Of a stretch of DNA of 64,000 nt, positions 20,110 through 48,330 are shown piece after piece; the first letter of the stretch is position 1, and the number at the start of each line of letters is the position of its first letter. The notes under the pieces are model-generated. The model ran no database searches, had not been told where the DNA came from, and saw nothing but the letters and a program-made list of their open reading frames with translations. The stretch spans positions 7,257,241 through 7,321,240 of the forward strand of contig OZ316899.1 in NCBI GenBank assembly GCA_973895155.1, written 5' to 3'. This DNA is from Marsupella aquatica (lineage: Eukaryota > Plantae > Marchantiophyta). Made by a program: the position numbers and the translations under genes.

Positions 20110-23100
20110 CACTAGAAGAAAACCTGTGTTTTACTACTACAGGCCCTGCAACTACTTTGCCTAAATAACTCATACGTGGTGCCAAACACTGTTTTTTTAA
20201 TGGGTTGTAATAATCTGCATTTTATTACTCTACTTAGAACTATGTTACCTTAATCACTGATTACAACTCTCCTTTTTGCCACTAAAACTTACATCACTTG
20301 AATTAGAGTTGTATATTACACAAATTTGCAAATCACTACAATCCACCGTCCACTACACCGTCGATGTTTACAACTCTATTTTCAACTAAGATTTTACCAC
20401 TGGCAGAAACCACTACAAATACAAATACCACCAATATTTGAATGGTAAAGGTGCTTTTTCAATAAACTCCCAATCAAGTGAATCATTTCCAAGTGATCTC
20501 AATTACTTGAAATAATGTCATTTGTGAACACACCTATTGTTACTATAAATATCACCAATAGTGGAGTCACAAATGAATTTTGTCAAAGTAACTTTAAAAT
20601 ATTTTAGTGACAAGGACATTTTTACAAACAACTTAAGATTGAGTGGATTATTTGTCACTGTCCAAAAGTCTTTAAATAAAGTCATTATTATCACATATTG
20701 TACAACTACAAATGTCACTCATATTAGAGTCCAATAAATATCATTTGATGCAACTTTAGACCAAGTGTCACATTCTCCATAGTCCAAAATCACTCTAAAG
20801 AATGTCATTCTCTTCATACATTTTATTAACTCCAAATGCCACTAAGAGTAGAGTGCCAATGCAGGGCCTTGCAAATGACTTGAAATGAAGTGGATCATCT
20901 TCCATTCTCAGAAATCACTATAAATAATGTCATTCTTTAAATACATTTTGCAACTACAAATGCCACCAGCATTAGAGTGTCAAAACAATTTTGACAATTG
21001 ACTAAAAATTGGGCAGATTATTTTGTGATGTCCAAAACCTCTCCCAATGATGTCATTATCAACAAACATTTTCAGTCAAGATATGCATGCCACCCGAATT
21101 ACAATGGCAAACGAATTATATTTTACAACTTGTACCCAAACCACTACAGAACAGGTGGTTATAGGGTTTTGGGCACCTGTCACTTGAAATACCACCGTGT
21201 TTTGAGTTGGGAAAATTATGTGTTTAAACTTGCCATGAATTGCATTTATATGTACCAGCCCAAACCACTTCACATAAGGTCGTTTCGAGCCCTCACCTTT
21301 TGGCAACTACAAATTACACCCGTATTTGAGTCATGCAACACACATTGGTGCGACCACTTGCTATGAACTAGTGCTAAAAGGAGTGAATTGTGTGGACGCA
21401 TCACATAAGCTCCATATTTGTAATTCCGTAGAGTCTTGGAGTGATTTGGGTGGAGTTCATGATGTTCCATAACTTGTGTGCCTCAAATCTCTTCACCTTG
21501 GCATTTTATCCGTCACAACCTCATTGTTGTTGCTATAACTAGTTGGCACACATGATGGGGGTGTCCCACGGCTTCACCATGGGGTGGCTAACACAGAGGA
21601 ATTGTGATGGCGGCGGGCCCAACCCTCCTCCTTTAATGATGGCCCTCTGAGAATTGTCACAAGGTGGATCCACTTCTCATTATCCATTGTAAGTTTGTCA
21701 CTCCCCAAATCACTAAAAACTCTGTTCTTCAAAACCCTCATTTCTAGCGACTAACATTATCACTCAAGCTGGGGTGGTAAATCACGCATCCCTCTAAACA
21801 ACTTCTCATAAAGTGGTAGTCCTAGGGTGAGTACGTATTGGTCCCAAACCATTACAAATGAGGTGGTTTTAGGGTTTAGGGCAAATGCAACTTAAGATAC
21901 CACCGTTATTTGAGTTGAGAAGTAAATTGGGTGTGAACACTTGCAGTCAAGTGCATTTGAGTGTACCAGCCCAATTGACTCAAAAAAAGGTCCTTTGAGG
22001 CCCTCGCCTTTTGGCGACTACAAATTGCACCCGTATTTGAGTCATGCAACACACTTTAGTGCAATCACTTGCCATGAACTAGTGCTAAAAGAAGTGAATT
22101 GTGTGGACGCATCACATAAGCTCCATCGTTGTAATTCCGTAGAATCTTGGAGTGATTTGTGTGGAGTTCATGATGTTCCATCACTTGTATGCCTCAAAGT
22201 TCTCCACCTTGGCATTTTATGCGTCCCAACCTCATTGTTGTTGTTATAACTAGTTGGCACACGTGATGGGGGTGTCCCACGGCTTCACCATGGGGTGGCT
22301 AACACGGAGGAATTGTGATGGCGGCGGGCCCAACCCTCCTCCTTTAATGATGGCCCTCCGAGAATTGTCGCAAGGTGGATCCACTTCTCATTATCCATTG
22401 TAAGCTTGTCACTCTCCAAATCACTAAAAACTCTGTTCTTCAAAGCCCTCATTTCTAGTGACTAACATTATCACTCAAGCTGGGGTGGTACATCACGCAT
22501 CCCTCTAAACAACTTCTCATAAAGTGGTAGTCCTAGGGTGAGTACGTATTGGTCCCAAACCATTACAAATGAGGTGGTTTTAGGGTTTAGGGCAAATGCA
22601 ACTTAAGATACCACCATTGTTTGAGTTGAGAAGCAAATTGGGTGTGAACACTTGCAATCAAGTGTATTTATATGTACCAGCCCAATTGACTCGAAAAAAG
22701 GTCCTTTGAGGCCCTCGCCTTTTGGCGACGACAAATTGCACCCGTATTTGAGTCATGCAACACACTTTAGTGCGACCACTTGCCATGAACTAGTGCTAAA
22801 AGGAGTGAATTGTGTGGACGCATCACATAAGCTCCATCTTTGTAATTCCGTAGAGTTTTGGAGTGATTTGGGTAAAGTTCTTGTGTGCCTCAAATATCTC
22901 CACCTTGCCATTTTATGCGTCACAACCTCATTGTCGTTGCTATAACTAGTTGGCACACATGATGGGGGCGTCCCACTGCTTCACCATGGGGGGGCTAACA
23001 TGGAGGAATTGTGATGGTGGCGGGTCCAACCCTCCTCCTTTCATGGTGGCCCTCCGAGAATTGCCGCAAGGTGGATCCACTTCTCATTATCCACTGTAAG

Positions 23101-23500
23101 TTTGTCACTCCCCAAATCACTAAAAACTCTGTTCTTCAAAGCCCTCATTTCTAGCGACTAACACTATCACTCAAGTTGGGGTGATACATCACGCATGCCT
23201 TTGAACAACTTATTGTGAAGTGGTAGTCCCAGGGTGATGGTTGTTCACAAACCACTGCAAATGAGGTGATTTTAGGGTTTAGGGCAAATGCAACTTAAGA
23301 TACCACCGTTATTTGAGTTGAGAAGTTAAATTGGATGTGAACACTTGCAATCAAGTGCATTTGAATGTACCAGCCCAATTGACTCGAAAAAAGGCCCTTT
23401 TGAGCCCTCACTTCTTGTGGATTGAAGGTGAATGACTTGCACTTCTGGACCTAGCTTCACTCCATGATTGACAAATTGAGCACTAGATTTAGATAGGATA
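20110..23500. mobile_element. CACTA (En/Spm) element end, non-coding
   Basis: CACTAGAAGAAAA terminus at exactly the point where homology to family X stops; many subterminal actacaa/cacta motifs. Right boundary uncertain. Confidence 0.7.
21130..23410. repeat. ~711-bp tandem repeat (~3.2 units)
   Basis: tgtaccagccc at ~21251, 21962, 22673 and 23366; units carry a (degenerate) ttttagggtttaggg. Confidence 0.92.
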
Positions 23501-26004: not shown

Positions 26005-27052
26005 TTATTTAATCGTCAAGATGTATCCATACTTTGCCCGTTTTTGGCTAGCGCCAAGCGCTAACCACAGGACACACTTCTTTTTGGAGACAAAACTCCT
26101 ATCTCTTTTGCCCATTAGAAAAGATAAATGCCATTTAGAGTTGTTCAACATTCCCAAATTGTCTAAATGTCCATTTGATATTGTCGACCAAGTAGGTAAC
26201 GGACTTTGCCCAATGTGGGAACTGGTTTGACTTGATAATATCGGATCATGAAGATCCAACTTCAACACATTCCTAAATACCCAATATAGATATTTGCAAG
26301 GCATGTAGGGTTTTTTGTAAATGTGTCGACGGTAAAAATCCTCACACGAGCAACAAGGGAAACAACAAATCTGAACCCAATAAGAGGTTGCAGTCCTCTC
26401 ATGTTCATGTGTTCTAATACAATATTGTTTTCCCCAAGCATTCCCACTCATGACATCTCTCTTGCATATCAATCTCATTATTTCTTTTTCAGATGCTTCA
26501 ATCTTCTTGTAATGTGTTTGAGTTAGATTCACTCTTTGCAAGCACTTCCTTCCATTCCTTGAGGGACATCTCAAAATGGGGTCTGCCAAATTGATCATCT
26601 CCTCGAACAGATTCACATCAATGCGTAACTTGGATGAGGATGGCTCCTGAGAACCTTCCCCTCTCTCTCCTTTCACAATTAGTTCTTGTTCTCTCAAGAA
26701 TTGGATCTCGCCCTCCTGAAGATTGGTCCCTCTCGCAATGGGAAGAATGGATGGTACATTGGGAATGTTTGAAACACCTCTTCTTTGTGACATTTGTTAT
26801 TTGGGCAAAACCATATCTGGTCTGAGTGGGGCTCTAAACTAAAAAGTCTACATCCTCTCACTGATATTTCCACAACTCCTTCTGGATTTGGACACCCAAT
26901 CTTCTTTACTCAATTTTGACATTCATTTTGGCTCCCTCTCCAACCAAGGGTTCCATTGCAAGCAAGACCAGCACCACATTTTGAAGTTTGTCAGAGATGC
27001 CACACCTAGAGCTTTATCACTTTCCATGGGGAGAAGAGAGTCTTCAGGCGCG
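26005..27052 (-). pseudogene. MULE copy 2, C-terminal part with SWIM finger
   Basis: YWVQICCFPCCSCEDF..PCKYLYWVF and WFCPNN, homologous to 13341-14414. Confidence 0.8.
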
Positions 27053-27659
27053 TGTCGTGCGCATACACATCGCTACACATCATACATCGCTTGTCACATA
27101 CATCCAAACATAGTCATATTGCCACATCACAAACACCAGAGAATGGAATACAAGTGAAACTCATGTCCACACATGTCCAAAACCCACAATAATCTCAATA
27201 CAATTGGCACAACGATCCCGGTCAACAATACCCCATTGATCCCGCACCGATCCGATCACACACGTATCTCAAGCCAACGCACCTTGCACTACTCAAGGAA
27301 TCCACGTTACACAAACAAAGCTCACAACCACCATAGCCACTCAAGATCCTCTCTCTCTCCAAGGCTCAACATTGAAAGATGACCTTTCAATGCCTCACAA
27401 GTGAGAAGTACCCTCTCACACAAACCTGACGGAACCTTATCGGCTCATATAGCACACATACCAAACATACAGATCTAGATAGTACGATACACTCTAACAC
27501 TACCTAGAATGGTGTGACAGCTGTCGTGCGCATACACATCGCTACACAACATACATCGCTTGTCACATACATCCAAACATAGTCACACTGCCACATCACA
27601 AACACAAGAGAATGGAATACAAGTGGAACTCATGTCCACACATGTCCAAAATCCACAAT
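27053..27659 (-). repeat. 3' terminal repeat complex, + strand order A(27053-27190)-B-C(27326-27519)-gc-A(27522-27659)
   Basis: Two 138-bp A copies; C matches 41446-41637; G-tract (gctaggggggcg on minus) abuts the inner A. Confidence 0.92.
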
Positions 27660-27832
27660 CGCCCCCCTAGCTGGGAGTAAGGTCCCCTAACTCTAGCTAG
27701 CCATGAGTTCTACAAGGTTGATATACACCTTTTTAGGTGTGAAGATCAGGAGGCCGGGTGCAAGTGAGCCCCATCGATCACCTACCTGCAATCCATATCT
27801 GCCAAGAGAACACAAATGATAACTAGTCGGCT

Positions 27833-29320
27833 TCATCGACACTGAGGACACAACCATGATCCACTAGGAATCACCTACAATGGTGGTGTCAAACATGATA
27901 TGTGTCATCCTCTAGAACACTTATCACAAATCAACATAGTAGTTGCTCCCTGAGCACATCCACACAACATACATTTCAAGCCAGCACGAACATGTGCCAA
28001 GCTTGGATATACTGTACCGTCAATGTTGGGAAGGTGACATGGTGCACAGTTGCGCACATGATCCTTCCAAACCATACCATCGCGTCCCTCCAACATCAGG
28101 ACACCAGAAGGCAACACTTCACGCACACGTAAGATTGTCCGGCCTGCGGTCACATCAAGTATTGTGGGTGCTGTCTGCTGCAAATAAACATAATCACCAG
28201 GATGAAATCGTCGAATGCTTGCACACGCGGTAACCTCCTCCACGAATAGTGGCATATCTCAAAGTATCACGATGTTGGGCAATGGCAAGGTTGTCAAAAG
28301 CCATGGGCATCACTCTCTGAAATACCCGTGCTCTCTCTAAACACACCTTGATCCAAACATCAGGATCATCCAAGTTCACAACTGGTGCAGCATCACGACA
28401 AATAGTTGCTGGCAAATCTGGCTCTCTACCATAGAGCAAAAAGTAAGGTGAGAAGGATGCAAGTGATGCTTGCCGACTGAAACGGTAGCCCATAGCTAAC
28501 CAAGGTAGCTGGAGATCCCAATCTCCCAGATGACCAACCTGCAAGCCATACTTACGCAATCCTCTCTTCATAGTTTGCACAACTCTCTCAGCTAATCCAC
28601 CTGCCTCAGGATGATCACAAGAGGTAGTACGATGATCAATCAGAGCTTGTTCACACAAACTCTCAAACTCTCCACGGAACTCAGTTCCCTGATCAGTCAA
28701 CACCTCAGTTGGTGCTCCAAAATGACTAAGTACATGATCCAAAAATGTAGCAGCAACTCCTCCACTGGCTTTATCTGGCAACGCCACTAGCTCAATCCAC
28801 TTGGAGAAGTGCTCCACCATGACCAAAACATACCGATTATGACGTTGCGTAAGAGGTAATGGACCAGCAAAATCCAAACTCCAACGATATCCCAAACCCA
28901 TGATCGGCAATGGGTGCAACTAGGGAGTGGGAATATTAAATGATGCTCTCACTCTATCACATACCACAAACTTAGCTATCAACTGCTGGACATGAGTGTG
29001 CATACCACGCCACCAATACTGTGTCTGCAGCAAGCTATAAGTACGCTTCACACCAAAGTGACCCAACTCCTCGTGTGCATGTCGCACCAAATATACTCGT
29101 TGTGATGGTTTTGGTACCACCAACACCCTACCATCATGCGGTACTCTCAAAAGATGGTTTCCCTCCCATCGAAACCTCTTGGCTCTCTGTAGAACCTTGT
29201 CACGTTCTTTGGCATCAACAATGCCAACAATAGAACCATTGCGCAGATATTCCAACACTCTCACATCATTGTGAATATCTTGTTGTCCAGAAGTTACCTC
29301 ACCAACATCCACATCTGAAG
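27833..29320 (-). pseudogene. Integrase (HHCC + DDE) and C-terminal PHD finger
   Basis: HEELGHFG..C.VC, WSLDFAGP, TDQGTEF, GLAERVVQT and CMLC..MLICDKC..WH..C..W.C..C. Confidence 0.9.
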
Positions 29321-29325
29321 ACTCA

Positions 29326-30879
29326 TCATCCACTCCATCCAATGAGGTAGAGTCCACAGCCATTGTATGCTGGCACCCAACAAAGAAAGGCAGATGCATG
29401 CCATCCTGGCACCATCTTCTTATCTAACTCATTATGCCATCTCGCTCCAGTCTCATCCTGCTGACTAGTACATGGATTGCGGCTTAATCCATCTGCATCC
29501 AAGTTCACTTTTCCAGGCCTATGCACCACCTGGAAATCATACTCCTGTAACAACAATGCCCATCGTGCAAGCTTCCCTGTAAGCTTGTCAGACTCCATTA
29601 ACCACTTAAGAGGCTGATGATCAGTGATCAAGGTGAAGGGGTTACCAAACAAGTAGCAACAAAAGTGTGCAACAGCCCACACTGCTGCCAAACACTCTCC
29701 CTCATAAGAGCTATACTTAGTCTCTGCTGAATTGTTTGATCTACTAACATAAGCCACAACAAACTCATTCCCCTCATCATCCTTCTGAGTCAGCACTGCT
29801 CCAAGTCCTACTCCACTCCAATCAGTGTGTAGCTGAAATGGTCTGCCTGAAATGGGTCTTCTCAAAATAGGGGATGATGCCAAACTTTGCTTCAACTCCT
29901 GAAAGGCATGCTCCTGGTCATCACCCCAAATCCATTCCTGATCCAACTTAGTGAGTATGGTCAAAGGTTTAGCAAGCTGGCTAAATCCTTTAACATACCT
30001 CCTATAGTAGCTCGCCAATCCCAAGAACGCACGAACTCTACTCACATCAGTAGGACAAGTAATCTGTGTAATGGCCTCCACTTTAGTCTGCTGTACATCC
30101 AATCCCTCTGGGTATATAGTGTGGCCCAAATACTCAATCTGTTCTTGGAAGAACTTACACTTGCTAGGATGGAGTTTCAACCCATGTGCTCTCAATCTCT
30201 CCAACACAATCTACAAGTGCTGCTGATGTTCTTCCACAGTAGAAGAATAGACCAAAATATCATCAATATAACATCTGACAAAATCCAAACCTGCAAGGAT
30301 TCGATCCATGACTCTTTGGAACTCAGCTGGTGCATTCTTCAACCCAAATGGTAAGAATAACCACTGATACAAACGATCTTTGCCATAAGAATCAATCCCC
30401 CAGAATGTTGTCTTGGACCTATCAGCATGCCTAATTGGAAGCTGATGGTACCCTGCCCTCAGATCCAATGAACTGAAAACCTTTGCATGCCCCACAGCAT
30501 CAAAGATCTCCTCAGGTGTGGGCATGGCATATCTATCAGATTTTGTCTGGCGATTAATGGGTCTGTAATCACCACACATGCGCCTATCTGTGTAATTGCC
30601 ATGCACATCCTTCTTGGTTGGCATCACTGTGGTAGATGCATACTCCCCATATGAAATCTCCACCAATCCAGCCTCCAATAAATCTTGAGTTCTGCTTTGA
30701 ATCAGAGCTCTCTCCATGTCATTGTAATGGTATGGCCTACAAAAGATTGGCGCATCACTAGCCAATTCAATCTGAATACCAAGACCCTTTAATGTCCCCA
30801 AATCCTTCATGCTAAATGCAAAACAATTCCAGTAACTCTTCAGGAATTGATGCATGCAACGTCTCTCCTCCCCTGTCAA
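29326..30879 (-). pseudogene. Gypsy reverse transcriptase and RNase H
   Basis: RMCGDYR, LDLRAGYHQ, PFGLKNAP, YIDD, HTDWS and TDHQPL; stop at 30211. Confidence 0.93.
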
Positions 30880-31149
30880 CTTAGGGCCAAGCTATGGTTC
30901 CCAACTCTCCACCAAATCCCTAATATCTCTTTGTAGGGTAGAAGAGATAGCTGATGATTGTTATTTAGTAGTAGATTGAGCAGTCCCTTCCTGCTCAACA
31001 ATCTGTCCAGCCTTGGCCAATCGTGCCATAGGTCCATGGACCGTCTGCTCACCCCCAACTGTGGTTAGTATTGTCTCAGTGGACCGCAAGCTCACCAAGG
31101 GACAATCAGTAATTCTAGCATAGCGCATCCGCAACCGTTCAGCTACTCC

Positions 31150-32110
31150 CAAGCTGATAATCCAAGTCAAACAATTCAGATCCATTGCTTGACCAAGAAC
31201 CTGGCGCCACAAACCCTCTGACACAGAGGCAACTGCAGTGGTGCCAGTAAAAAATCCCATAGCACGCTCTCTCTCATCAGCAGTAGGCTCCACTAACTGC
31301 TGGAGAGCTGTGTCCCACACAAGTCCAGGGCCACCTGCTCTTAATGCATATGAAGCAGAGTGGCTTACAAGAGTGGGTAATGCACAACATGGGCGCCCAA
31401 CTGCATTGACCATTGCCAATGGAGGTCTATCAGGTTGGGTCACACCCTGTGCACAATGCCCTGGATCCAAAATATCATCCACCACTAAGGCTAGTGAGCG
31501 TGGAATGCTGTCAAATGCGCGCTTCAGCACCTCACATGGGATCAAATTGGTCCACCACAAGCGTGGACGATGTGCACGGGAACCCACACGTGCAACATCC
31601 AATAACACAACAAGTCCAATCCAAGACCTCACCTGGTGAATACTGGCAACAAGCCGACTATGATCATCACCTAACAATGGCACATTCTCCAAAATGTATG
31701 CTGGAGATTGTGTCTGATGTAGCTAGAGATGACGCAGCACCAGTAACATTTCACAAAACAATGCAGAGCGTGGATCATGAAGTCCATGCCCAACGCCGGC
31801 TCTAGATTGGCCCTGACATGGCCAATCAACAATCACCAAATCAATGGGGCCAACACGATGCAGATGATCCGCGCCCAGCAATGAAATATCAGTAGGTAGT
31901 GCATGCTGATAACCACGAACAGCATCCACTGGCAGCAACTATGGATATCTATCCACCAACATAGCCACATGTTGCAATGAGACCCTCTGTGCTGTCTCAT
32001 CTGTATCCACATACAAATAACGACGCACAGGAATTCCTGCCTGAAGAACAGCAGCCAATCCAGTGCTAATCCCACCAAAAAGATCCAACAAACAAATACC
32101 CTCCGATGGA
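31150..32110 (-). pseudogene. C5 cytosine methyltransferase domain (DNMT3-like) in the pol frame
   Basis: Motif I LLDLFGGISTG, IV WPCQG, V GL.DPRSALF, VI LENV, VIII AHRPRLWWTNL, IX ERERAMGF and X LGQAMD, all in one frame with TAG stops. Confidence 0.88.
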
Positions 32111-32181
32111 TACTGCCAAGCAATAGGAGTGGTGTCCAATGGTGAAAGAGTCACAAGTCCATCTGCAAGAGACTGCTCTGC

Positions 32182-34858
32182 TCATGACTTTGGTGTAAAA
32201 GCATGACGCCATGCATCATGTACCAATCGTGCTGCTGTCTGTGGCAAGGCCTGTGCATTGCCCCACACTAGTGGCACAACACTGCCAATAGGTAATCCTC
32301 GCATGATGTGCTCCTCATGTGACTCCTCCAATGGTGGAACATCTGTTGCATGTGCATTACCCTCAATCAAATCATCAGGTCCAGCAATTAGACCACTGAA
32401 TGCTACCAAAGACAATGGTGTGGATTTAGGGCCTCCCATAAGTCCACTAAATCTCACTGGCAATTTGCTCAATTGAGCATCTCCTAACTGCCAATCAGGT
32501 CTATATGACATTGATTCCTCCAAAAAATCAAGAATAAATCCCATGGGGTAGAGCATTGTACATCCCACCAACACATCATATGACTCTGCCTTAGTCAGAA
32601 TAGCTCGCACCTGTATCTATGAGCTATCTGTGGTATGACCTTCCTGAATCCTCAAATCAAGAGGTCTCCTGGTAATGTGCTGTGTAGGTGTAGGTCCCCC
32701 CAATGAAGTCTGAATGGGAAAGGGACAATCCTCCAAATCCTCTGGACGCAATCCCAATCCACGTATGACAGACTTTCCCAACATCAAGGGCTGAGCACCA
32801 GTATCCAGTAACACCCTCTCTGGCTAGTATACTGCTCCAGAAAGCCCAACTAATCAAAAGATACCACTCCGATTATCCAATGATACAACACTAGGTTTAA
32901 ACCTAGTCCTCTCAAATGCAGGGCGTGCTGGTAAATCCACCAAGCTCACTGCTGCTGCATGCCATGTCTCACTAGTAGCAATAGGTGGCATGGTCTTCAC
33001 TGCATCAACATTGCAAGTTGCTTCTGCATGGGAAGCAACCACTGGAGTGTCCTCACAGAGTGTAGCTACCAATCTGAACACTTCTGTAGGACCAACTCCC
33101 AAGTTCAGCATGTCTGTCGCTGAAAATAATGGGGTGCGTACTATGGTAGTAGCCGCCCCCAGCAGGGTACCTGTCATCCCTGCTGCATCACTACCTGATT
33201 CTACCAACTTACCCACGCCAGGGTTTGTCCGAATCGGGTTCATAGAGGCAGTCTGAACTGTCTCTGACAATGTAAAAGACTGAGGAAACTTTGTTTGCCG
33301 ACGTGCATCCCCCTTTGTGGATCTAACTCCACTACTGCTCCTCAGGGCTCAAGAGCTTTAGCTGCCCCACGTGTCAAAGCTGCTGATGCATCAATATGTG
33401 CAGTGCCACACAGAATCCCATGGTGGCAAGGTCTCCATCAGCTCCATAAGATGTGGAAGGACCATGGGATGTGGAAGGTCCATAGGATGTAGATGCCCCA
33501 TCACCAGAAGTAGGTCTCATCTGAGAACTAGCCATGGAAGCTAGCTGTTGCTCCAATTGAGCAATCTTAGCATCCTTTGGATCTATGGTTACAGTAGGGG
33601 CAGCGTCACCTCCCTGTCTCCCTACATGTGGCATGCCACGACCACGTCCACCACCTCTACCTCCTCCTCCTCTTCCTTGATCATGTGTACGGGATCCTCC
33701 TCTTCGTAACTCAAGGTGGAGTGAGAAACACCTATCCTTGGTGTGTCCAGGAGCTCCACAGTGATCACACTGTCGCTGATTAGGCGTTGATGCTCCCCCT
33801 GATCCTCTATGATCTGGGCAATATCTCTGTGCATGATCCCCACCACAGGTCCAACATCCTGACTGCTGTCCAACATAAGAGGGCACAGGTCTCTGGCTGG
33901 TAGACTCTCGTGCAGTAGGCTTCTCCCTCTGGCTCTTCCGTGCAGTAGGCTGTGGTGTGGATGTAGATGCAACCTTTGGTGCTTCCTTGGCAAATCCGGA
34001 AGTCACCACCTTCTCATTCACCATATTGAGCTCAATACGCTCAAAAAGGGTAAAAACAACTACTAATGTGGGATCTGCATCCCTAAGCAGGGTGACATCT
34101 CTCACTCTGCGTCGCAATTCTCTTTTCAAAATTGCATACCAAAACTAGACTGCCTGAGCCTTTGTCACTCCCTTGGTGACAGTGATCAATCTGCGCATAC
34201 GAGTGTATGCCTCACATAGACTCTCTCCAATTTTGCGCTGGAACTCCTAGAGACCCTTCAACTTATCAGCTCTCACACCCTGATAGTTTTGCTTCGGTAC
34301 CTCAAAGAATTCCACCACAGGGTTAAATACTGGTGCAACTCCAGTTCTTGTCACAATCGCACCGGCAGGAGTAGCGGTGGATGATGCTGGAGTGCTGCTG
34401 GTGGATGGTGTGCCACTCTGGCTAGTGCTGCTAGAAGAAGCAGCAGCTGTGGCAATGGGTTGGGCAGCCGCACTAGTGCCATAGGTGATGGACACGTAAT
34501 TAGGCGACCAATGCTGCCTCCATGCCTCAATCTCAACCAAATGAGCCTTCTGAAACCCATGGTAGTCATCCATGGGTGGCCCCTCCAAATGCTGAAATAA
34601 TCCCTTCCATGCCATGAAAGGGGTAAACAACGTGGCGTTACGCAATGTCTGCATATTGCACCACGTATCAAACTCTTGGATGAAGTCATCCAGATCAATT
34701 GTGCCAACTGCACCAGAGCATTGTCGTGGGCCCTTTGTAGCCCCGTACATCTTGTCCATATCCCACAACAAAGGTACAACCACCTGATGACGAGGAGAAC
34801 TGGTCATTGAGTCCTCGTCGGAATCACTATCTGAAGCTGCACTGCTGACTGCTACCAA
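32182..34858 (-). pseudogene. gag (two CCHC knuckles, RG-rich tract) and aspartic protease
   Basis: CWTCGGDHAQRYC, CDHCGAPGHTKDRC, VLLDTGA and DVLVG. Confidence 0.85.
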
Positions 34859-35407
34859 TGCCGCTGGCCAAAATTACGCCCCACTCTGAGTGAAACCGGT
34901 CCGTCGTCCATCGGGTAACCCAGCAGCACCAGAAGAATCCGTGGTGACCAACCTAACCGAATCTATATGATAACCCTAAGGGAAATCTGTCCTTGTCAGC
35001 AACACAAACACTCACCATGGTGTATTGGGCATCACTCCAACATCACCAGGAGAGAAATACGTAGCACAACTAGAATATCCGGTTGCAAACCCGGATCACT
35101 CCTATAGAATCAAGCGCCCACGCCAAACTAACATGGTGCATAAACAGGAAGCATATGTGGAGAGGATCCAATCAACAAGAAGAGATCCACAATAACTCTC
35201 CACATCAATAGTGATCATACATCAATCAAACAATGTTCATAATGTTCAATGTGGGGCCTTCATAATAGGCCTCCAATGTTCAATGTCGTAGCTAAGGATC
35301 CATGCACAATTGGTTCAATCCATGCATCTAGATGGATTCAGAAGCATCAAAAACCTTCAGGGAGCTTATGATTTGCCCCAAAATGGCAATCTAAACAAAC
35401 TAGTATG

Positions 35408-35571
35408 TGTTGTGTGACAATGGAGAGACTTGCAACTCGCTATTGTGTTCCATTATGGGTGTGACTTATATAGTCACCATAGGGTTACATGTTGGGGTTG
35501 GTGTTAACCCATGTTACCCCTTCAGGATAGGGTTAGGGGTTAACCATGGTCTAGAGTAAATGGTTACAACA
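35408..35571 (-). repeat. Copia 3' LTR
   Basis: TGTTGT..ACAACA, identical to 41032-41195. Confidence 0.95.
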
Positions 35572-35933
35572 CTTCCCCTTGGAGAGTTTAGGGGTATAAA
35601 ATCACCACACTACTAACCCTATGTTTATTTTTGGTGCTACCCCATTAAAACCTTCTGCTTTCTTCATAAGGAAAAAGGGTTCTAGCCACCATTAGTAGGA
35701 TTTTCTTAAATTTGCACTAAGGTGAGTCTACCTTATAATTTGTCCAAATGTAAAGTTTAATTTGGGTCCCCTATTACTAAAACTACTTCCCCTTAGTTTA
35801 AATGGGGTGTTTACGATAATAATTATTCTATCTTGTATTGGTATGAAAAATCGTATTCTGTCTATGTATACAGGAACGAAAGTTTTAGGTTGCATCGTCG
35901 TCGAGTCGGCTGTCGTCTGTCGGCTCGAGCTGC

Positions 35934-38900
35934 TCATTCAAACTGTGGAGTTTCTCTCGTTTGTGTGTCGACGGGCAGGCGCAATGTCGACAATCTTGTC
36001 ATGCCGATCGCTGCTACGTGCTTTCGATGGAGGCTGGCGGGTAATGGCTTCGTGAATAGATCAGCACAGTTCTCCTGGGAGCTCTTCCAGTGCACATTGA
36101 TGTGCTGCCCTATCTGTTCATGGGTAAAGAAAAATTTTGGGTCGATATGCTTCGTGCGGTCTGTCTTCATATATCCTGCATTGATTTGGTCCACGCAAGC
36201 TTTGTTATCTTCATGGATAATCGTCGGTTTGGTGAGTAGTGGCTTACCAGTATTCTTGCGGATGTGGTTTATGATGTTTCGAAGCCATAGCGCTTCTCTT
36301 GTTGCTTCGTAAAGAGCTATTACTTCTGAATGATTGGACGATGTGGTAGTCAAGGTTTGTTTTGTACTGCGCCATGATATTGCTGTGTTGCCTTGCAAGA
36401 AGACATAACCAGTCTGAGATTTCGAGTCATGCGGATCGGATAGATATCCAGCGTCCGCGTATCCTTGCAGTTCATCCGGGTTATCATTGGCGAAATACAG
36501 GCCCATATCCATGGAGCCTTGAAGATAACGAAATAGTCGTTTGATGCCGTTCCAGTGGCGAATAGTAGGTTGGGCGCTATGTCGTGCCAAGAGACTCACT
36601 GCAAATGAAATGTCGGGACGGGTGTTGTTCGCCAGATAGAGGAGAGCTCCGATTGCAGATAAATAAGGCTTGTCTGCATCAAGAAGTGGTTCATTTTCTT
36701 GTCTCCTTCTAAACATATCTTTAGTGGTGTCCAGGGATCGCATCTCCATGGGAGTCGAGACTGAGTAAGCATTTTGCATGTTAAACTGTCGAAGAATTTT
36801 CTTTGTGTAAGTTGATTGACTAATAAACATACTTTGTGGCAGGTGGTCGAACTGTAGACCGAGGCAATACGTCGGTTCTCCCAGTTCTTTCATTTCGAAG
36901 ATGCCCTTCATTGTATTAATAGTCTGCTTTAATAGCTTGGGGGTGCCGAACAGATTGACGTCATCAACATATAGTGCTAATATCACGAACTCAGGTGCTA
37001 GGTGTTTTATAAAAATGCAAGGGGCGAGGTCGTCATTTATAAAGCCAAGAGTCTGCATCTTAGTTTTGAATGTCTGATACCAGATGCGTCCGCTCTGTTT
37101 CAGTCCGTTTATTGATTTAAGGACTTGCACAGCAAATGCCTGCTGTCCAGTCCCATATTTACCTGGGTACTGGAGTGGTTCTTTGAGTGTGTTGCCACTG
37201 CTCAACACTAGGCCTTTAATGTCATCATCAGGGACAATCTGTCGAAGTCCCGACTTCATGTCCTGACTTAGGGTATGTATATTCTTCCCCTGGATGTGCT
37301 CTACCACTCTTTCGAGCAATTCCTTTGGAGCTTTCATATATATTTCGGAGTCTAAGACTCCATATAGGTACGCAGTTACCACATCCATGAGTATGTTTTT
37401 GAGTTTATGCTTTCTTGAAAAAGATATTAAGTACCTAAAGGTAGTTACATCCATAACTGGCGAATAGGTTAAATCGTAATCCCTTCCAGGGATTTGGGTG
37501 TAGCCTTTCGCTACAAGCCTTGCTCGATATCTTATGACATCTCCTTGGGCATTGCGTTTTCTAACGAATATAAAACGACTATCTGTATAGTCATTCTTTG
37601 GTTGTACAACCTTAACTGGGCCGAATACTTGTCTTTTGATTAATGCGTCCATTTCTGTATTGATAGCCTCTCTCCACTGTGGCCAATCGGGCCTTTTCTG
37701 TGCTTCTTTGATTGTATAGGGATCAGGTGTATCATTTGAGATGGATTGGGCTATATGATAAGCAAACTGCTCGTCTATTATTGTGTTTGATCGAGCATAA
37801 ATGTGTCCTGTGTGTGTGTATTGAATAGACATTTCTTCATTATCTGGTGCCCTCTTTTTCTCTGGTTCGATACTGACCAGATTAAATGTGGTTTCAGTAT
37901 TTACCGTTTGTGTACGTCTCTGGCGAGGGCGAGAATCAGTGGATCCTAGTGGGCGTCCTCTCTTCGCCTTAGGTAAGGTTTCCTTTGCTTGAGTTGGCAG
38001 CAGCTGAATCCGAGCTGGGGTATTGACTGCTTCAACATGTGATCTGGTCACATTTGCTGCGTCATTGAAAGCGTCAGGAATCTTTTCCAACATTTCGTGG
38101 AGATGTAATAAGCGCCTTACCTCCTCGTCTGCACTTTGAGTTCTTGGATCTTGATTGAGTAGATTTCTGCTATTCCAATTGAGCTGTACTGGTGTTATGT
38201 CGTGTGATGTAGTTGGCGCCTTAAGTAATGAGGGGAAAATTTCCTCATAGAAATGGCAGTCAGTGTGTCTTGCTTTAAATACATCAGCTGTGCTAGGTTC
38301 CAGATAGCGGATAAGAGACGAGGAGTCATGGCCAATATAAATACCTTCTCTCCTCTGTGGGCCAAGTTTGGATCGATGTGGCCCAAGGATGGGTACCATC
38401 ACTTTACATCCGAATACTCTAATGTGTGAAAGGTCAGGGGGTAAACCGAATGCAAGGTGATGAGGGGTTTTAGTATTAAATGCTGACGGCCGATACTTAA
38501 GCAAAGTTGTTGCATGGAGGACAGCGTGTCCCCATGCTGAAGGTGGTAGTTTAGAGTTCAATAGAAGTGGCCTTGTTATCATTTGAATCCTTTTTATGAC
38601 TGACTCTGCTATGCCGTTCTGGAAATGGACGTAAGGAACTGAGTATTCAATGTCGATCCCCGCTGTCATACAGAAGTCGTCAAATGCTCTGGAGGTAAAT
38701 TCCCCTGCCCCGTCCACTCGCAATTTCTTAATTGGACAATCTGGGAATTGTACTCGAAGTTTTAATAAGTTGGCTAAGATTCTGGCAAAGACCAGGTTAC
38801 GAGTAGAAATTAATGAAACGTGGAGCCATTTAGTTGAAGAGTCTACAATGGCTAAAAAATATCTGAAAGGCCCACTTGGAGGGTGTATTGGCCCGCAGAC

Positions 38901-40574
38901 ATCAGCATTTAGACGTTCCAGGAATTTAGGGATAGTATAGATGGTCTTTTGTGTAGCTGGGCGTGTACTCAGCTTCCCCTGAGAACATGCAAGACATTGC
39001 TTATGATTTATAGATGGACGCACTCCTTTAGGGATTCCTCGTGAGTCCTTGATGATGCGACGGTACATATTTATTCCCGGGTGCCCCAGTCGACAGTGCC
39101 AGAGGTATGTAAGATTATTTGATTCTGCTGTGGCATAGTTCGCTGTTATTGGGGCTGCATATAAACCCGGGGGTATTAGAGGTAGTATCTCTTTGATTTG
39201 AATTCCATCTGTGGTCATGGCTACTATTTGCAAAGTAGGTTTCTGCTGGATCATTGCTGTGCGGAGTTGATAATTATTAGCAACAATGTCTTTGAAGCTA
39301 ATCAAATTTCGAGTAGCTTTTGGTGCAAAGATAGCTGCTTCGATGTTAATGACTGTTCCTTGGGGAAATTTGACAGTAGCCTTTCCTGTTCCTTCCTCAA
39401 TCTTATTCGTACCTGATATGGTTGTCATTATCCTGGCAGATGGAGTGATATCTTGGAAATAACTCCTATCTTTTAGGATAGTGTGGGATGTCCCACTATC
39501 AATGATACCTAAATTGGGATCGTTGGAGGAGGGATATGGTGGCTCTTCTGTCACCAGATGAGCTTCAGCGTTGGATTGGTCTATCGTATCATTTTCTTCT
39601 CGATAAGATGGTAGCTCCTCTTCCAATTCCATATAGTTGCCATCTGGATTTTGCTTTAACTTAGCTCTTGCTTCTGAGTGCCTCTTAGCCGCTTGGTCAG
39701 AAGCCCAGCAGTCTTTCTTTAGGTGGCCAATTTTTCCACATCTATAACACATTCGGTCTTCTCGTGTGTTGTCAGATGATTGGGCGTGACCTCTGCCGCG
39801 TCCTCTTCCTCTACCCCGGCCACGGCTTCTGCTGCCTTGACCTCTAGTATTTTCATACTGATTTCCCCTTCCACTATAATTTGAGTTGCGACCTCGTCCT
39901 CTATATCCACCTCTTTGTGTACCCCGGCCTCTTATATTTCGTTGTTGGTCTTCTGGGGCATTGTAATTAATTTCTGGTTTCTGTGGTATAGGTGCAGTGC
40001 CTGGTGGTCGTTTCCTTGCATTCTGTATAGAGACAATTTGTTGTTTCTCCTCTACTAGGAGATGTGCAATTAAGTTAGAATAAGTTGTGAATTGCATATT
40101 CCTGTATTGAGTTCCCAAGGCGATGTTGGCCTCTGGGAAAGTACTCAACGTTTTATCGATTTTGTCTAAGTCTGCAACTGGGTGGCCACACATCTCCAAT
40201 TGAGATGTAATACGAAATAGAGAACTATTATAATTTGCTATAGAAGTATGATCCATGACACGTAGATTAAACCAATCCCTGCGGGCTTCTGGGAGCCAGA
40301 CCTCTCGCATATGGTCAAATCGAGCTTTTAATTTGTCCCATAATAGACGGGGATTAAGATCACTCATATATTGTGTCTTCAGTGATGGTGTCAAATGCTG
40401 TCTAAGTAGAAATACAGCTTTGGCCTTCTGTTGCAATGTTAAATTGTCATCAGTAATTAATGTATCCTCTAGTTGTATTGATGCGAAGTAGGTCTCTACA
40501 TCTATTGACCAGGTTAAGTAATTATTGCCATCTGCCAATAGGGCTGGAAAGTGTAATTTCTCCAGGGTGGCCAT
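35934..40574 (-). CDS. Copia gag-pol polyprotein (gag, CCHC, protease, integrase, RT, RNase H)
   Basis: CYRCGKIGHLKKDC, IIDSGTS, LWHCRLGH, VDGAGEF, NGIAES, YVDD, YADA, HEDNKA and ADLFTK; uninterrupted. Confidence 0.96.
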   Translation of the reverse strand: MATLEKLHFPALLADGNNYLTWSIDVETYFASIQLEDTLITDDNLTLQQKAKAVFLLRQHLTPSLKTQYMSDLNPRLLWDKLKARFDHMREVWLPEARRDWFNLRVMDHTSIANYNSSLFRITSQLEMCGHPVADLDKIDKTLSTFPEANIALGTQYRNMQFTTYSNLIAHLLVEEKQQIVSIQNARKRPPGTAPIPQKPEINYNAPEDQQRNIRGRGTQRGGYRGRGRNSNYSGRGNQYENTRGQGSRSRGRGRGRGRGRGHAQSSDNTREDRMCYRCGKIGHLKKDCWASDQAAKRHSEARAKLKQNPDGNYMELEEELPSYREENDTIDQSNAEAHLVTEEPPYPSSNDPNLGIIDSGTSHTILKDRSYFQDITPSARIMTTISGTNKIEEGTGKATVKFPQGTVINIEAAIFAPKATRNLISFKDIVANNYQLRTAMIQQKPTLQIVAMTTDGIQIKEILPLIPPGLYAAPITANYATAESNNLTYLWHCRLGHPGINMYRRIIKDSRGIPKGVRPSINHKQCLACSQGKLSTRPATQKTIYTIPKFLERLNADVCGPIHPPSGPFRYFLAIVDSSTKWLHVSLISTRNLVFARILANLLKLRVQFPDCPIKKLRVDGAGEFTSRAFDDFCMTAGIDIEYSVPYVHFQNGIAESVIKRIQMITRPLLLNSKLPPSAWGHAVLHATTLLKYRPSAFNTKTPHHLAFGLPPDLSHIRVFGCKVMVPILGPHRSKLGPQRREGIYIGHDSSSLIRYLEPSTADVFKARHTDCHFYEEIFPSLLKAPTTSHDITPVQLNWNSRNLLNQDPRTQSADEEVRRLLHLHEMLEKIPDAFNDAANVTRSHVEAVNTPARIQLLPTQAKETLPKAKRGRPLGSTDSRPRQRRTQTVNTETTFNLVSIEPEKKRAPDNEEMSIQYTHTGHIYARSNTIIDEQFAYHIAQSISNDTPDPYTIKEAQKRPDWPQWREAINTEMDALIKRQVFGPVKVVQPKNDYTDSRFIFVRKRNAQGDVIRYRARLVAKGYTQIPGRDYDLTYSPVMDVTTFRYLISFSRKHKLKNILMDVVTAYLYGVLDSEIYMKAPKELLERVVEHIQGKNIHTLSQDMKSGLRQIVPDDDIKGLVLSSGNTLKEPLQYPGKYGTGQQAFAVQVLKSINGLKQSGRIWYQTFKTKMQTLGFINDDLAPCIFIKHLAPEFVILALYVDDVNLFGTPKLLKQTINTMKGIFEMKELGEPTYCLGLQFDHLPQSMFISQSTYTKKILRQFNMQNAYSVSTPMEMRSLDTTKDMFRRRQENEPLLDADKPYLSAIGALLYLANNTRPDISFAVSLLARHSAQPTIRHWNGIKRLFRYLQGSMDMGLYFANDNPDELQGYADAGYLSDPHDSKSQTGYVFLQGNTAISWRSTKQTLTTTSSNHSEVIALYEATREALWLRNIINHIRKNTGKPLLTKPTIIHEDNKACVDQINAGYMKTDRTKHIDPKFFFTHEQIGQHINVHWKSSQENCADLFTKPLPASLHRKHVAAIGMTRLSTLRLPVDTQTRETPQFE

Positions 40575-41018
40575 AGTATCTCAAATCTGTAACAAATCAC
40601 TGTCCGCGTTCTGATTAATATCAAATCTATGTCGTTCTCAATTACTTCAATCACTCGTGCCTTTTTATCCACGGGATTTTCCTTGGCGATAAAAGAAACT
40701 CAGGATTTCCGTGGCGGAACAATAAGATATAAAAAAAATTGAGTCGAATTTGAACGGGAAAACACTATTTCAAAGTGATTCATGCCTCTCCGATAGTGTC
40801 ACTAATCAATTATATACGGATTGTGTGTTTTCCGTAAGGATTCGTGGACTATTCAGAGGATCCGAAGTTTAAATTATGGTGTGATTTGAATCGGTGGCAG
40901 TTACTGATGTGGGGTGGGGCTAAAAACGCAACATTGGAAGTCAATTTCTTTGTCTGAAAGCCGTACTCCAATTATCCTACCTTAACTCCAAACTGTAAAA
41001 AAAAAAATTAGATGCTAT

Positions 41019-41031
41019 CGCGCTGATAACG
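41019..41031 (-). promoter_or_regulatory. Primer binding site, internal (half) tRNA-iMet type
   Basis: CGTTATCAGCGCG immediately after the 5' LTR. Confidence 0.8.
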
Positions 41032-41195
41032 TGTTGTGTGACAATGGAGAGACTTGCAACTCGCTATTGTGTTCCATTATGGGTGTGACTTATATAGTCA
41101 CCATAGGGTTACATGTTGGGGTTGGTGTTAACCCATGTTACCCCTTCAGGATAGGGTTAGGGGTTAACCATGGTCTAGAGTAAATGGTTACAACA
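41032..41195 (-). repeat. Copia 5' LTR
   Basis: Identical to 35408-35571. Confidence 0.95.
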
Positions 41196-41445
41196 GTATG
41201 TGTATAAAATGCCTAAGTGCTCATTCCATTAACATCAAAGTGGAAAGGAGTGTGTGTACACAAGAGCACTTGAGAACCACATAGTTAAGCGCATGGGGAA
41301 GGAATAGCTTTGGGATGGGTGACCTCTCACTTGTAGTTATGCACCAAATTGGCCGCTCCAAAATCAGCAGCTTGCAACTACTCCTCACGTACCAGCTTGT
41401 TGGCTCCTGCTTCGCCCTCACGCCCCTCGTCCTGAGTTGCCTCGA

Positions 41446-41637
41446 AGCCACCATAGCCACTCAAGATCCTCTCTGTCCAAGGCTCAACATTGAAAGATGA
41501 CCTTTCAATGCCTCACAAGTGAGAAATACCCTCTCACACAAACCTGACGGAACCTTATCGGCTCATATAGCACACATACCAAACATACGGATCTAGATAG
41601 TACGATACACTCTAACACTACCTAGAATGGTGTGACA
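41446..41637 (-). repeat. 5' terminal repeat C of the DNMT-Gypsy element
   Basis: Matches only 27326-27519; A and B are absent at this end. Confidence 0.92.
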
Positions 41638-42560
41638 CGCGGCCTCAGCTTCATGTCTGACGGGAGAAACACACGAGCTTGTCATTTGACGTGAGGTGTT
41701 TTCAGGACCACGACCTCCTCATAATCTTCACTTTCACTTTGAGACAAATTAACAACGCCACTTCCACTAGCAAAAGGCATGGAAGACATCTTCTCAACGT
41801 CTATGGAATGAAGGTTTCTCCTTTTCAAACCTCTTGTATTTGGTGAAGTCACAAGGATAGTATCATGTTTGTGAGAGTCTTGTGCCGAGACATTCCCAGT
41901 TGCATGTCCTTTTTGTTTCACTGATCAAGTTATCATTGGGGTTATCATGTCTCCATTCAATAGAACAGTTCTTTCCAAATCAAATTCAGTTGCTTGGAAA
42001 GAAGTAGATTGGTGGCTTCTTCAAATAGACATGGAGACCCTGCCATGTCTACGGATCTGAAAGCCAGCTCAAAGATAGTTGGTCCAATTCCCCTATGTAA
42101 TCCTCGACCGTATGCAGTGTAAGTTGCAATCTGGCATACGGCTCTGTTTTGGTCAGTTTTGCATCCCTCCAAGAGGCCAACCTGCTTCTTCATTTTCCAA
42201 GCTTGCACGCTTGTGTGCATTGATTCCAAACTAGTACAATTTGGAATCATCCCAACCTCCTCAGCACTCTTGCTTTGTGACAAGAAATGAATAGAAATAT
42301 TTAGTGTATTATAAACAAAAGTACTTAACAATATGTATTGGATTCATGTCAATGTGGATGAACTCTTAACCTTAGTAGCGCGTGGTGCTATTAAATATGC
42401 AGTGTAAATGCCATGGCTGCAGTTCCATTTTGAACCACATTCTAATCTCACAATGTGCACAAAATTCCAGATTTTACATTAGCGCTTGGCGCTACTATTT
42501 TGAACAGGAGCAGGGGACGTGTCGTTCACATTTTCCAAAGTAGCATCGGGCGCTATAATT
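41638..42560 (-). pseudogene. MULE copy 2, upstream part (DDE core exon not seen)
   Basis: MIPNCTSLESMH..EGCKTD.NRA..G.GPTIFELAF matches 12840-13235; tagcg..cgcta palindromes continue to ~42557. Confidence 0.75.
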
Positions 42561-46790: not shown

Positions 46791-48330
46791 AATCATCCTA
46801 GAAACTAAGTCCTTCCCCCTCATGAACCAAGATAATTTGCTCTGCCCCTTTGATTTCAGGATAGTGTCCATCGCACTCGCGAACTGGATACATCGGAACC
46901 CTTTCAGGGACATTAGTTTGAAGCCATGAATTTCTTCCCTCACCTTTGGAAGTGTCCAAGATGTCGATGACATTGACGTGTGTCACGCCAAAAGATTCAT
47001 CCTTAATTGGATTTTGGCTTAGGCGGCCATAAACTCCGTAAATATTGAGGGTTCGGGCAAGGAGGGATGTGCGGACGGTACTTTATTCCCGTAACTTGAT
47101 ACTAAATGTGCCAAACCATATCCTTACACACATCATAGGTATAATTTGTATTCCGGCGCCGGAACGTACCTTAAGTCGATAGCTAGTTTGACCCTGGCTC
47201 AAGGACTTCTAAGCCTTCGTGCTATCCGCCTTCGATCCAATAATAACCGCTATCCGCAACCAACACCCCATGCCCAGCTCGTATAGCGCGTTCGGCCAAG
47301 CATTCTTTACCCGTACACAAGATTTACAATTGCAACAGTATTCACAACATACAATCTTGATTTACACAAAGGAAATAGTGGGGAACAGACTTTACTTCAG
47401 AATCCGTTTATGCACATACACACGGTTGACTCGACTTCTTCTAAATAACCAGGCCCAACGGCAAAGACGCGTACACTACAATGGAGCCCGGCTCCGCACT
47501 TGCCCAATGAGTTGAGTTGTACCCTCAATCCTTGGAGCTCAATTATGCACAAAGGCTGGGACTCCTCGCACATCCTGCGGATACCCATTTTTGAACCTAA
47601 ACCCCCCCAGGCTGCCTCTACCGGGGGTGCACTAAATACTAAGAGCCGTGGCTAGAAGTGGTCACGTGCTTGAGTTCTAGCCTATGCTAATCCTAGCTAA
47701 ATGCCAGTCTGCTAAATGGTTTGTCGTTACCCTAAGATGCTACGCTAAGGAAAGTTGTCAGAGCCGCTCTAACTAGTTTTGGCGCTCGTCGGTAGTGTCC
47801 TACTTTTGTGGCTAAATCTACGCTACTCTAAACTATTAGCGTCGCCTAATGTCTGGCTCGCTTGCTAGATCCACCCGAGTGGGACTTGGATCGGCCGTCC
47901 TGCTGCTTCCTCAGCTTGTCGACGTCTTGCTTGAGGATCTGGACCTGGCCATGAGAGAATCATTCTCTCTTTACCACATCCATCTCCTTCGTGGCCTCCT
48001 GGCACGCCTCTTCCAACTGCTGACCGTCGCTCGTCAGGTTGATCACCAGTTGGTCTTGTTTAGCTGCTTCTACTTGAAGCCATACCACCGCCGCCTTTAG
48101 GGCATCCACCTTGGCCGTATCCCATTGGGCCCGAACGTCGGCCTTCTCTAGGTCCTTCTGCCAGATTATGGCTTGCCCCTTCAAGCTGTCAATTTGGGCT
48201 GAGAGTCGTAAGATTTTGGCATCTTTTCCGGATCCGGCCTGCTCGACCAAGGCTAACTTGGCTTTGGTGTTGGCAACCTGGGCGAGGGTGGTTGTAAGCT
48301 GAGGACAGAGACGCTCTAACTTGGTATCTT

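Follow-up and report, generated by a model that had tools for sequence, protein, structure and literature searches.

Retrotransposons of the DIRS order (PAT, Ngaro, VIPER and SymbioDIRS-Dnmt3) have split direct repeats in the order A1-internal-B1-A2-B2, use a tyrosine recombinase and, by the published criterion, produce no target-site duplication. KnitGypsy-Dnmt3 of Klebsormidium nitens combines Gypsy domains with a Dnmt3-type methyltransferase (de Mendoza et al. 2018, Nat Commun 9:1341, PMC5890265), and the legend of Fig. 4c in PMC5890265 gives its repeats as those of a DIRS retrotransposon. In the parts of that article covered here, no mechanism, target duplications, junction palindrome or self-priming was found. 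Here we describe a related element in a 64,000-bp stretch of the genome of the liverwort Marsupella aquatica (GCA_973895155.1, contig OZ316899.1, positions 7,257,241 to 7,321,240; the window), where one copy with both ends lies at 27053-41637 (copy 1) and a 5'-truncated copy lies further along (copy 2; Table 1). Copy 1 is probably a decayed liverwort member of a KnitGypsy-Dnmt3-like Ty3/Gypsy lineage, whose integrated form is X-PBS-...-PPT-A-GC-X-A (PBS, primer-binding site; PPT, polypurine tract) and would represent a circularly permuted provirus with two long terminal repeats (LTRs).

Coordinates are those of the window in plus-strand numbering, and the Gypsy element of copy 1 reads on the minus strand. 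The repeat names A, B and C follow an earlier interpretation of the locus (the sequence-only reading), and X denotes C and B together. Repeat finding, self-comparison and direct reading all agree with the split direct repeats and with the lengths given there for A and C. The two A repeats (138 bp) are 95.7% identical, and C is present at 27328-27519 and 41446-41637 (192 bp, 97.4% identity), with homology that extends to about 201 bp when aligned. B (about 27191-27327) is confined to the 3' block. In coding sense, the 3' end thus reads G-tract, A, GC, C, B, A, and the whole element on the minus strand has the layout X(5')...PPT-A-GC-X-A. Direct reading of both ends also upheld the proposed TG..CA bounds and CGCG duplication: the outer ends are TGTCAC...ACGACA with CGCG on either side, and the inner junction is ..acgaca gc tgtcac... 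The 14.6-kb span had been taken as Gypsy throughout; the Gypsy bounds hold, but a nested Copia element (35407-41195) was missed, and the host Gypsy is about 8.8 kb once this is subtracted.

The claim that the 5' repeat consists of C only is true of copy 1 but not of the family, since in relatives the repeat comprises all of X. What follows the 5' C in copy 1 bears no resemblance to B or to any relative's X, and the similarity score of B against the distal part of the Marchantia X was reached by 0 of 300 shuffles. Because the 5' X of relatives is complete and B resembles distal Marchantia X, the 5' X of copy 1 probably lost B after insertion. A candidate homology of B to the sequence after the 5' C was rejected, its local alignment score being reached in 176 of 500 shuffles.

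Copy 2 has the same 3' layout, as had been noticed, with an A-GC-X-A block at 58487-59092, and is 95.6% identical to 27053-31090. Since homology between the two copies stops exactly at the element end, they are separate insertions, and the segmental duplication raised earlier as an alternative origin of both is ruled out. The copy-specific repeat variants described before are likewise present: columns 84 and 123 of A have variants common to both A's within each copy, and in the first 80 nt of C the 5' and 3' repeats of copy 1 agree at about 16 sites where copy 2 differs. The first approximately 80 nt of X (27440-27519 and 41558-41637 compared with 58873-58952) are about 20% divergent between the copies, despite 95.6% identity overall. 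Copy 2 breaks off at 62519 and is probably interrupted by another repeat family, with 62520-64000 being 66% similar to 47017-48253. Open reading frames (ORFs) of long interspersed nuclear element (LINE) type are found in its flank, and LINE fragments (55896-56957 and 57766-58443) adjoin it.

The layout was followed through 87 related loci, comprising loci from Riccia, Marchantia and Klebsormidium, 80 metagenome contigs resembling bryophyte DNA, and two contigs with intact polyproteins. The integrase ORF of copy 2 (437 aa, with a PHD finger at its C-terminus) is 72-80% identical to proteins of Marchantia polymorpha, Riccia sorocarpa and Calypogeia fissa. The corresponding identity to K. nitens is 51-54%, and the termini and junction are shared with that species; these are pairwise comparisons only. 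A PPT-A-NN-X-A block is found in 24 loci, about 14 of which are independent after resampled loci are removed. In relatives, the block begins about 180 bp past the integrase stop and has an A of about 115 bp, a 2-base spacer and an X of about 340 bp. It reads ..aggggggcg-A-..gcacgaca gc tgtcatg..-X-A in Marchantia and ..ggagggg-A-..ggcgaca gc tgtcatgcc..-X-A in Klebsormidium, where the two A's are identical, and A-GC-X-A blocks are found in the chromosome-scale assemblies of Marchantia and Riccia. In loci with enough 5' flank, about ten 5' ends have a whole X about 8.3 kb upstream, and A is absent there. No 5' end was found for the copies from Marchantia (L002), Riccia (L001) and Mp_7g09570 (L084), which are truncated or replaced, and the K. 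nitens locus L085 is a pile of partial copies with no clean 5' end.

Two equal LTRs are thus not what the integrated copies contain: the 5' end has X alone and the 3' end has A-GC-X-A. Directly outside the start of X and the last A, six independent insertions have perfect 4-bp target duplications (AAGG, CATA, TCTC, TACA and TGTG in relatives, CGCG in the window), so the expectation that the layout would recur among relatives together with 4-bp duplications was confirmed. The DNA that integrase inserted was linear and ran from X (first bases TGTCA) to A (last bases GACA). Because the 4-bp target duplications lie at exactly these positions, the mode of insertion is that of a DDE integrase. The split-repeat layout is a trait of the family.

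An ordinary LTR element, in which the LTR is C-B-A, the 5' LTR was truncated later and a local duplication placed an extra A before the 3' LTR, could account for the sole 5' end visible in the window, which looks truncated and lacks B; C-B-A also begins with TG and ends with CA. We consider this very unlikely. The relatives' 5' ends lack A though their X is complete, so the alternative that most members have two full C-B-A LTRs fails, and target duplications are placed directly at the start of X. Moreover, the extra A and its GC spacer are conserved from Klebsormidium to liverworts, and the polypurine tract abuts the inner A and not X. A small TRIM-like (terminal-repeat retrotransposon in miniature) A-X-A element nested in Gypsy was rejected as well, in view of the additional X at the 5' end and of a block that different lineages have kept.

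The chance that the layout is secondary, produced from a normal element by unequal recombination, tandem arrays or assembly artefacts, is slighter still. Some contigs do have such features: L086 is a head-to-tail array, L027 runs from the 3' X into the leader, and L052 and L071 are rearranged. These have to be set against the same layout with clean duplications in independent insertions, in the chromosome-scale Marchantia and Riccia assemblies and twice in the window, and against the X|A joint of the 3' blocks, which is exact to the base.

Several loci have arrangements of their own. L086 (1-18357; ENA ERZ25067493, ctg159469_5x_c) contains 2.2 head-to-tail units of an intact relative with a period of 8262 bp and 99.8% identity and with A-GC-X at the joins; the contig, whose name has the suffix _c, represents either a tandem array in the genome or a multimeric or circular DNA. 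In L087 (8593-18801), an older copy seems to have received a young element of the usual layout 4 bp into its A-GC-X palindrome. The older copy has the mirror order X-A-GC-X, and the right-hand duplication is imperfect, with three bases missing. In L052 (3361-3900), L053 and L071, 14 nt of primer-site sequence come after the 3' X, and X positions 1-180 come next in inverted orientation, which could be a foldback or two elements head to head.

The repeats within an element are more alike than those of different lineages, as the two A's are 96-98% identical within elements and the same A is only 71-79% identical to that of other lineages. Within the old liverwort-type burst, the nearest A was not always the element's own partner (5/14), and the test is informative only between lineages. 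The palindromic junction is conserved in Klebsormidium, Marchantia, Riccia, L024, L086 and L087, and its motif GACAGCTGTCA is kept in lineages whose A and X no longer align.

The coding content is that of a Ty3/Gypsy-order element with a DDE integrase, as the sequence-only reading proposed: the pol of copy 1 is split into many ORFs, in which Pfam recovers the order protease (PR), reverse transcriptase (RT), RNase H (RH) and integrase (INT) with an rve core. Copy 1 would accordingly be classed as an old, broken Gypsy copy. The methyltransferase of this family and the PHD finger on its integrase had both gone unnoticed; a methyltransferase remnant is present in copy 1 (DNA_methylase, E=2.5e-4, 21.0 bits vs a cut-off of 22), together with a protease remnant (Asp_protease_2, E=5e-4). 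Over 762 residues, this region is 36% identical to ORF1 of the intact relative L027 (residues 532-1257). ORF1 of L027 has 1369 aa, with an aspartyl protease and a C5 methyltransferase (PF00145, E=1.8e-13) that is most like DNMT3A/B. It is followed by an in-frame stop and a 1047-aa RT-RNase H-integrase-PHD ORF, for a total of 2417 aa. The closest solved structure to the second ORF is Ty3 Gag-Pol (7q5b, 4e-98), and the integrase of prototype foamy virus (PFV) was also matched. In L086 (2358 aa) and L087 (2352 aa), all genes are in one ORF, which also includes a DNMT-type methyltransferase. The L027 stop (5083-5085), located between the gag-PR-DNMT and RT-RH-INT-PHD ORFs, could be a read-through control or a recent mutation. 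The methyltransferase is found between protease and RT in L027 (976-8226), L086 (3196-10272), L087 (10001-17059) and the window. By its ORFs and domain matches, the lineage encodes gag, protease and a DNMT3-like C5 methyltransferase, then RT and RNase H, and a DDE integrase bearing a PHD finger at its C-terminus. Annotated Marchantia genes such as Mp_4g09160 and MARPO_0091s0058 belong to the family.

The repeat layout by itself would also suit a tyrosine-recombinase retrotransposon of DIRS, Ngaro or PAT type in which only the pol is Gypsy-like. No Phage_integrase domain (PF00589) was found in the 2417-aa coding capacity of L027, and the recorded families of the L086 and L087 products include no tyrosine recombinase, in keeping with the earlier observation that such an ORF is missing. 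An rve integrase is present in all three, and the 4-bp target duplications are absent from DIRS-order elements, which leaves the probability of this explanation close to nil.

The signals for priming of reverse transcription further distinguish the family. The polypurine tract adjoins the inner A, not X, in copy 1 and relatives, and the same motif has this position in most of the 3' blocks listed and in L083. Because of this position, plus-strand DNA should start at the start of A. No TGG of a tRNA-type primer site follows the end of X, and ARAGORN found no tRNA gene in L001-L013, L083 and L084. The absence of a tRNA primer site, which had been reported before, thus stands, and in relatives it is explained by a signature of self-priming. 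In self-priming of the Tf1 type, the transcript start is complementary to a primer site next to U5. In the relatives, X holds a TATA box, and the sequence about 30 nt downstream is complementary to the sequence starting with the final base(s) of the 5' X. This complementarity covers 15-24 nt at TATA+28 to +44 in L012, L086 and L087. In L012, 15 of 15 positions pair; the 15-nt complement in L086 starts at TATA+31 and the 24-nt complement in L087 ends at the X end, and none of 500 shuffles reaches either of the latter two. The primer site pairs with its complement in minimum-energy and in centroid folds, and the complementary sequences differ among lineages with the pairing maintained. Because complementarity is found near the TATA box and at the end of the 5' X, the transcript is predicted to start inside X and U5 to end at the X end, and the lack of a tRNA site would follow from this Tf1-type design. 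A short hairpin, whose 5' arm repeats the primer-site sequence, is located just upstream of or overlapping the predicted transcript start in L012 (about 1835-1858), L086 (10802-10824) and L087 (about 9738-9764).

If copy 1 derives from a permuted two-LTR provirus, transcription would start in the 5' X and end in the 3' X, and the RNA's own 5' end would prime minus-strand synthesis, as in Tf1. Reverse transcription would build an ordinary LTR, A-GC-X, at both cDNA ends, with A-GC-proximal X as U3 and distal X as R-U5. The X|A joint of the 3' block would be the exact U5|U3 joint of the cDNA ends, and the inner A-GC-X junction would be the integrase att-att palindrome GACAGCTGTC. By the simplest route, the cDNA ends would be joined, in a circle or a head-to-tail copy, and integrase would then open the palindrome by the primer site, cutting CA|GC on both strands and leaving ends like processed viral ends. 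The integrated copy would then be a two-LTR provirus that is circularly permuted at the palindrome. As both A's and both X's would be regenerated from single templates in each cycle, they would be alike within an element and drift between lineages. The integrases of PFV and human immunodeficiency virus 1 (HIV-1) cleave palindromic LTR-LTR junctions (PMC1180852, PMC1905944).

A different route is replication in the manner of DIRS/PAT without a joined intermediate, in which a near full-length transcript is copied end to end, the inner A-GC-X serves as a spare template restoring lost end nucleotides, and the linear DNA is inserted directly. The layout is exactly the A1-internal-B1-A2-B2 order defined for split-direct-repeat elements, B is kept in the 3' blocks of both window copies, and this route would explain why a single permutation is seen. 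The priming signals are difficult to accommodate, as the polypurine tract before the inner A and the self-primer site after the 5' X put the strand starts at the start of A and the end of X, not at the integrated ends, and the terminal X-A of the RNA lies beyond the reach of any cDNA primed there. We therefore regard this route as unlikely, yet worth keeping in view.

Several points weigh against the permuted-provirus origin that we favour. Every replication step, including how the circular permutation arises, is inferred from DNA. With its two identical palindromes, a symmetric two-LTR circle should, if opened at random, also give the mirror form X-A-GC-X...A; none was found among the about 10 liverwort-type 5' ends, and only the older copy in L087 resembles it. 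In about 15 loci, a single A is the last part of the element before unrelated flank; two of these also have a 5' X and a duplication. Such loci may be A x A deletions or a different or direct product. The metagenome contigs are short-read assemblies of repeats, with some loci sampled twice. In copy 1 itself, the 5' X is without B and the primer-site match is only 10 nt (chance expectation of about 0.1 by our own estimate), so that the evidence for self-priming comes from the relatives.

Compared with described systems, the family is closest to KnitGypsy-Dnmt3, with which it has in common a Gypsy set with Dnmt3 and DIRS-type repeats; the K. nitens loci analysed here have the related integrase-PHD (51-54%), the PPT-A-GC-X-A block and the GACAGCTGTCA junction. 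The host here differs, being a liverwort, and the window copy is decayed. The fetched K. nitens contigs cover the element from pol or the integrase onward. Given this precedent and the shared termini and junction, the earlier statement that no DDE retrotransposon with this layout had been described was wrong. KnitGypsy-Dnmt3 is the only published member that we found, and the window copy is a new, decayed member of a kind that is known but scarcely described. The literature yielded no account of the family in liverworts, no second DDE element with the layout, no mechanism and no later use of the KnitGypsy-Dnmt3 name. We found no earlier description of the permuted-LTR reading, the junction palindrome, the target duplications or the signature of self-priming.

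The DIRS-order elements share the A1-internal-B1-A2-B2 order and differ in having a tyrosine recombinase and no target duplication, where the present family has an rve integrase and 4-bp duplications. TOC1 of Chlamydomonas, reportedly described by Day et al. in 1988, is said to be the classic example of a split LTR-like repeat, with parts at both ends; it is reportedly non-autonomous, linked to tyrosine-recombinase elements and later filed with DIRS/PAT-like elements. The Tf1/sushi group, which is said from Levin's work to use self-primed reverse transcription, resembles the family in the complementarity between the predicted transcript start and a primer site next to U5 and in the lack of a tRNA-type TGG, whereas Tf1 has ordinary LTRs and a chromodomain and no PHD finger or DNMT. 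The 2-LTR circle junctions of PFV and HIV-1 are alike in being a palindrome, ..CA-NN..-TG.., made from both viral DNA ends that integrase can open. In the viruses, this junction is found only in circles and between LTRs, whereas here it is encoded in every copy, inside the would-be LTR.

The positions of the features in both copies are collected in Table 1.

Table 1. Features of copy 1 in window order, followed by copy 2.
Feature	Position	Strand	Basis
3' target-site duplication CGCG	27049-27052	minus	Read directly
Terminal A, ends ..ACGACA at 3' end of element	27053-27190	minus	Repeats and direct reading
3' copy of X (C+B), TATA-like CTATATGA at about 27445-27452	27191-27519	minus	Repeats, alignment
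Palindromic junction GACA-GC-TGTC, from both integrated ends	27516-27525	minus	Read directly
Inner A, ends ..GCACGACA; predicted start of U3 in reverse-transcription sense	27522-27659	minus	Repeats and direct reading
Polypurine tract aggggggc, immediately 5' of inner A	27661-27668	minus	Read directly
rve core 28194-28919, integrase zinc finger 28920-29399, RNase H 29326-30207, RT 30211-30879	28194-30879	minus	Pfam; several broken ORFs
Protease and DNMT3-like methyltransferase region, decayed; DNMT remnant 31723-31938, PR remnant 32617-32814	31141-33297	minus	Similarity to L027, Pfam
Leader, second part, and gag-like region; broken ORFs, weak CCHC match	33374-35401	minus	Homologous to L027 ORF1 residues 216-437
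Ty1/Copia nested in Gypsy leader, including CATAC duplications	35402-41200	minus	Repeats, direct reading, Pfam
Leader, first part, up to Copia insertion	41201-41436	minus	
Candidate self-primer binding site ACAAGTGAGA, complementary to X positions 114-123	41325-41334	minus	10 nt perfect; tentative
5' copy of X (C only), starts TGTCAC, TATA-like CTATATGA at about 41563-41570	41437-41637	minus	97.4% identical to 27328-27519; homology stops near position 201
5' target-site duplication CGCG	41638-41641	minus	Read directly; equals 27049-27052
Copy 2, 5'-truncated: terminal A 58487-58624, X 58625-58952, GC, inner A 58955-59092, integrase-PHD ORF 59266-60579, RT ORF 61367-62239	58487-62519	minus	

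The Copia element nested in the leader of copy 1 is 5.8 kb long, with 165-bp LTRs (35407-35571 and 41031-41195) that are 100% identical. Its minus-strand gag-pol ORF (35934-40574) is uninterrupted over 1546 aa and has Pfam matches to gag, zf-CCHC, rve and RVT_2. The insertion is young and may still be active. Elsewhere in the window, a near-intact LINE on the minus strand (48648-53429) has an endonuclease and RT ORF of 935 aa followed by a zf-RVT ORF. The stretches 1781-2390, 21135-23417, 19273-20109 / 53782-54621 and 4261-5313 include tandem repeats whose periods are about 169 bp and about 710 bp, two inverted 840-bp copies that are 83% identical, and an ORF with DUF7869 (E=2e-36) that probably belongs to another transposon.

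Split direct repeats, taken as a hallmark of tyrosine-recombinase elements, coexist here with a DDE integrase and target duplications. The conserved 10-bp palindrome of both ends, the exact U5|U3 joint and the self-priming site provide handles on how the layout is regenerated, and they bear on the use of joined-end DNA by integrase as a normal substrate, which is disputed for retroviral 2-LTR circles. A more far-reaching proposal is that the lineage has been kept since before the charophyte/land-plant split, makes self-primed LTR cDNA, and has a DDE integrase that recognises the LTR-internal att-att palindrome and inserts a permuted provirus from a joined-end intermediate, either circular or concatemeric. 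We put this forward tentatively, as a possibility that falls short of being probable; if true, the DIRS/PAT strategy would have its counterpart among DDE elements, and the family would be the first whose retrotransposons integrate by circle-junction cleavage as the normal route. For bryophyte and charophyte genomes, LTR finders will misannotate or miss such elements, and as the family carries a DNMT3-like gene, its distribution alters the methyltransferase gene counts in these genomes.

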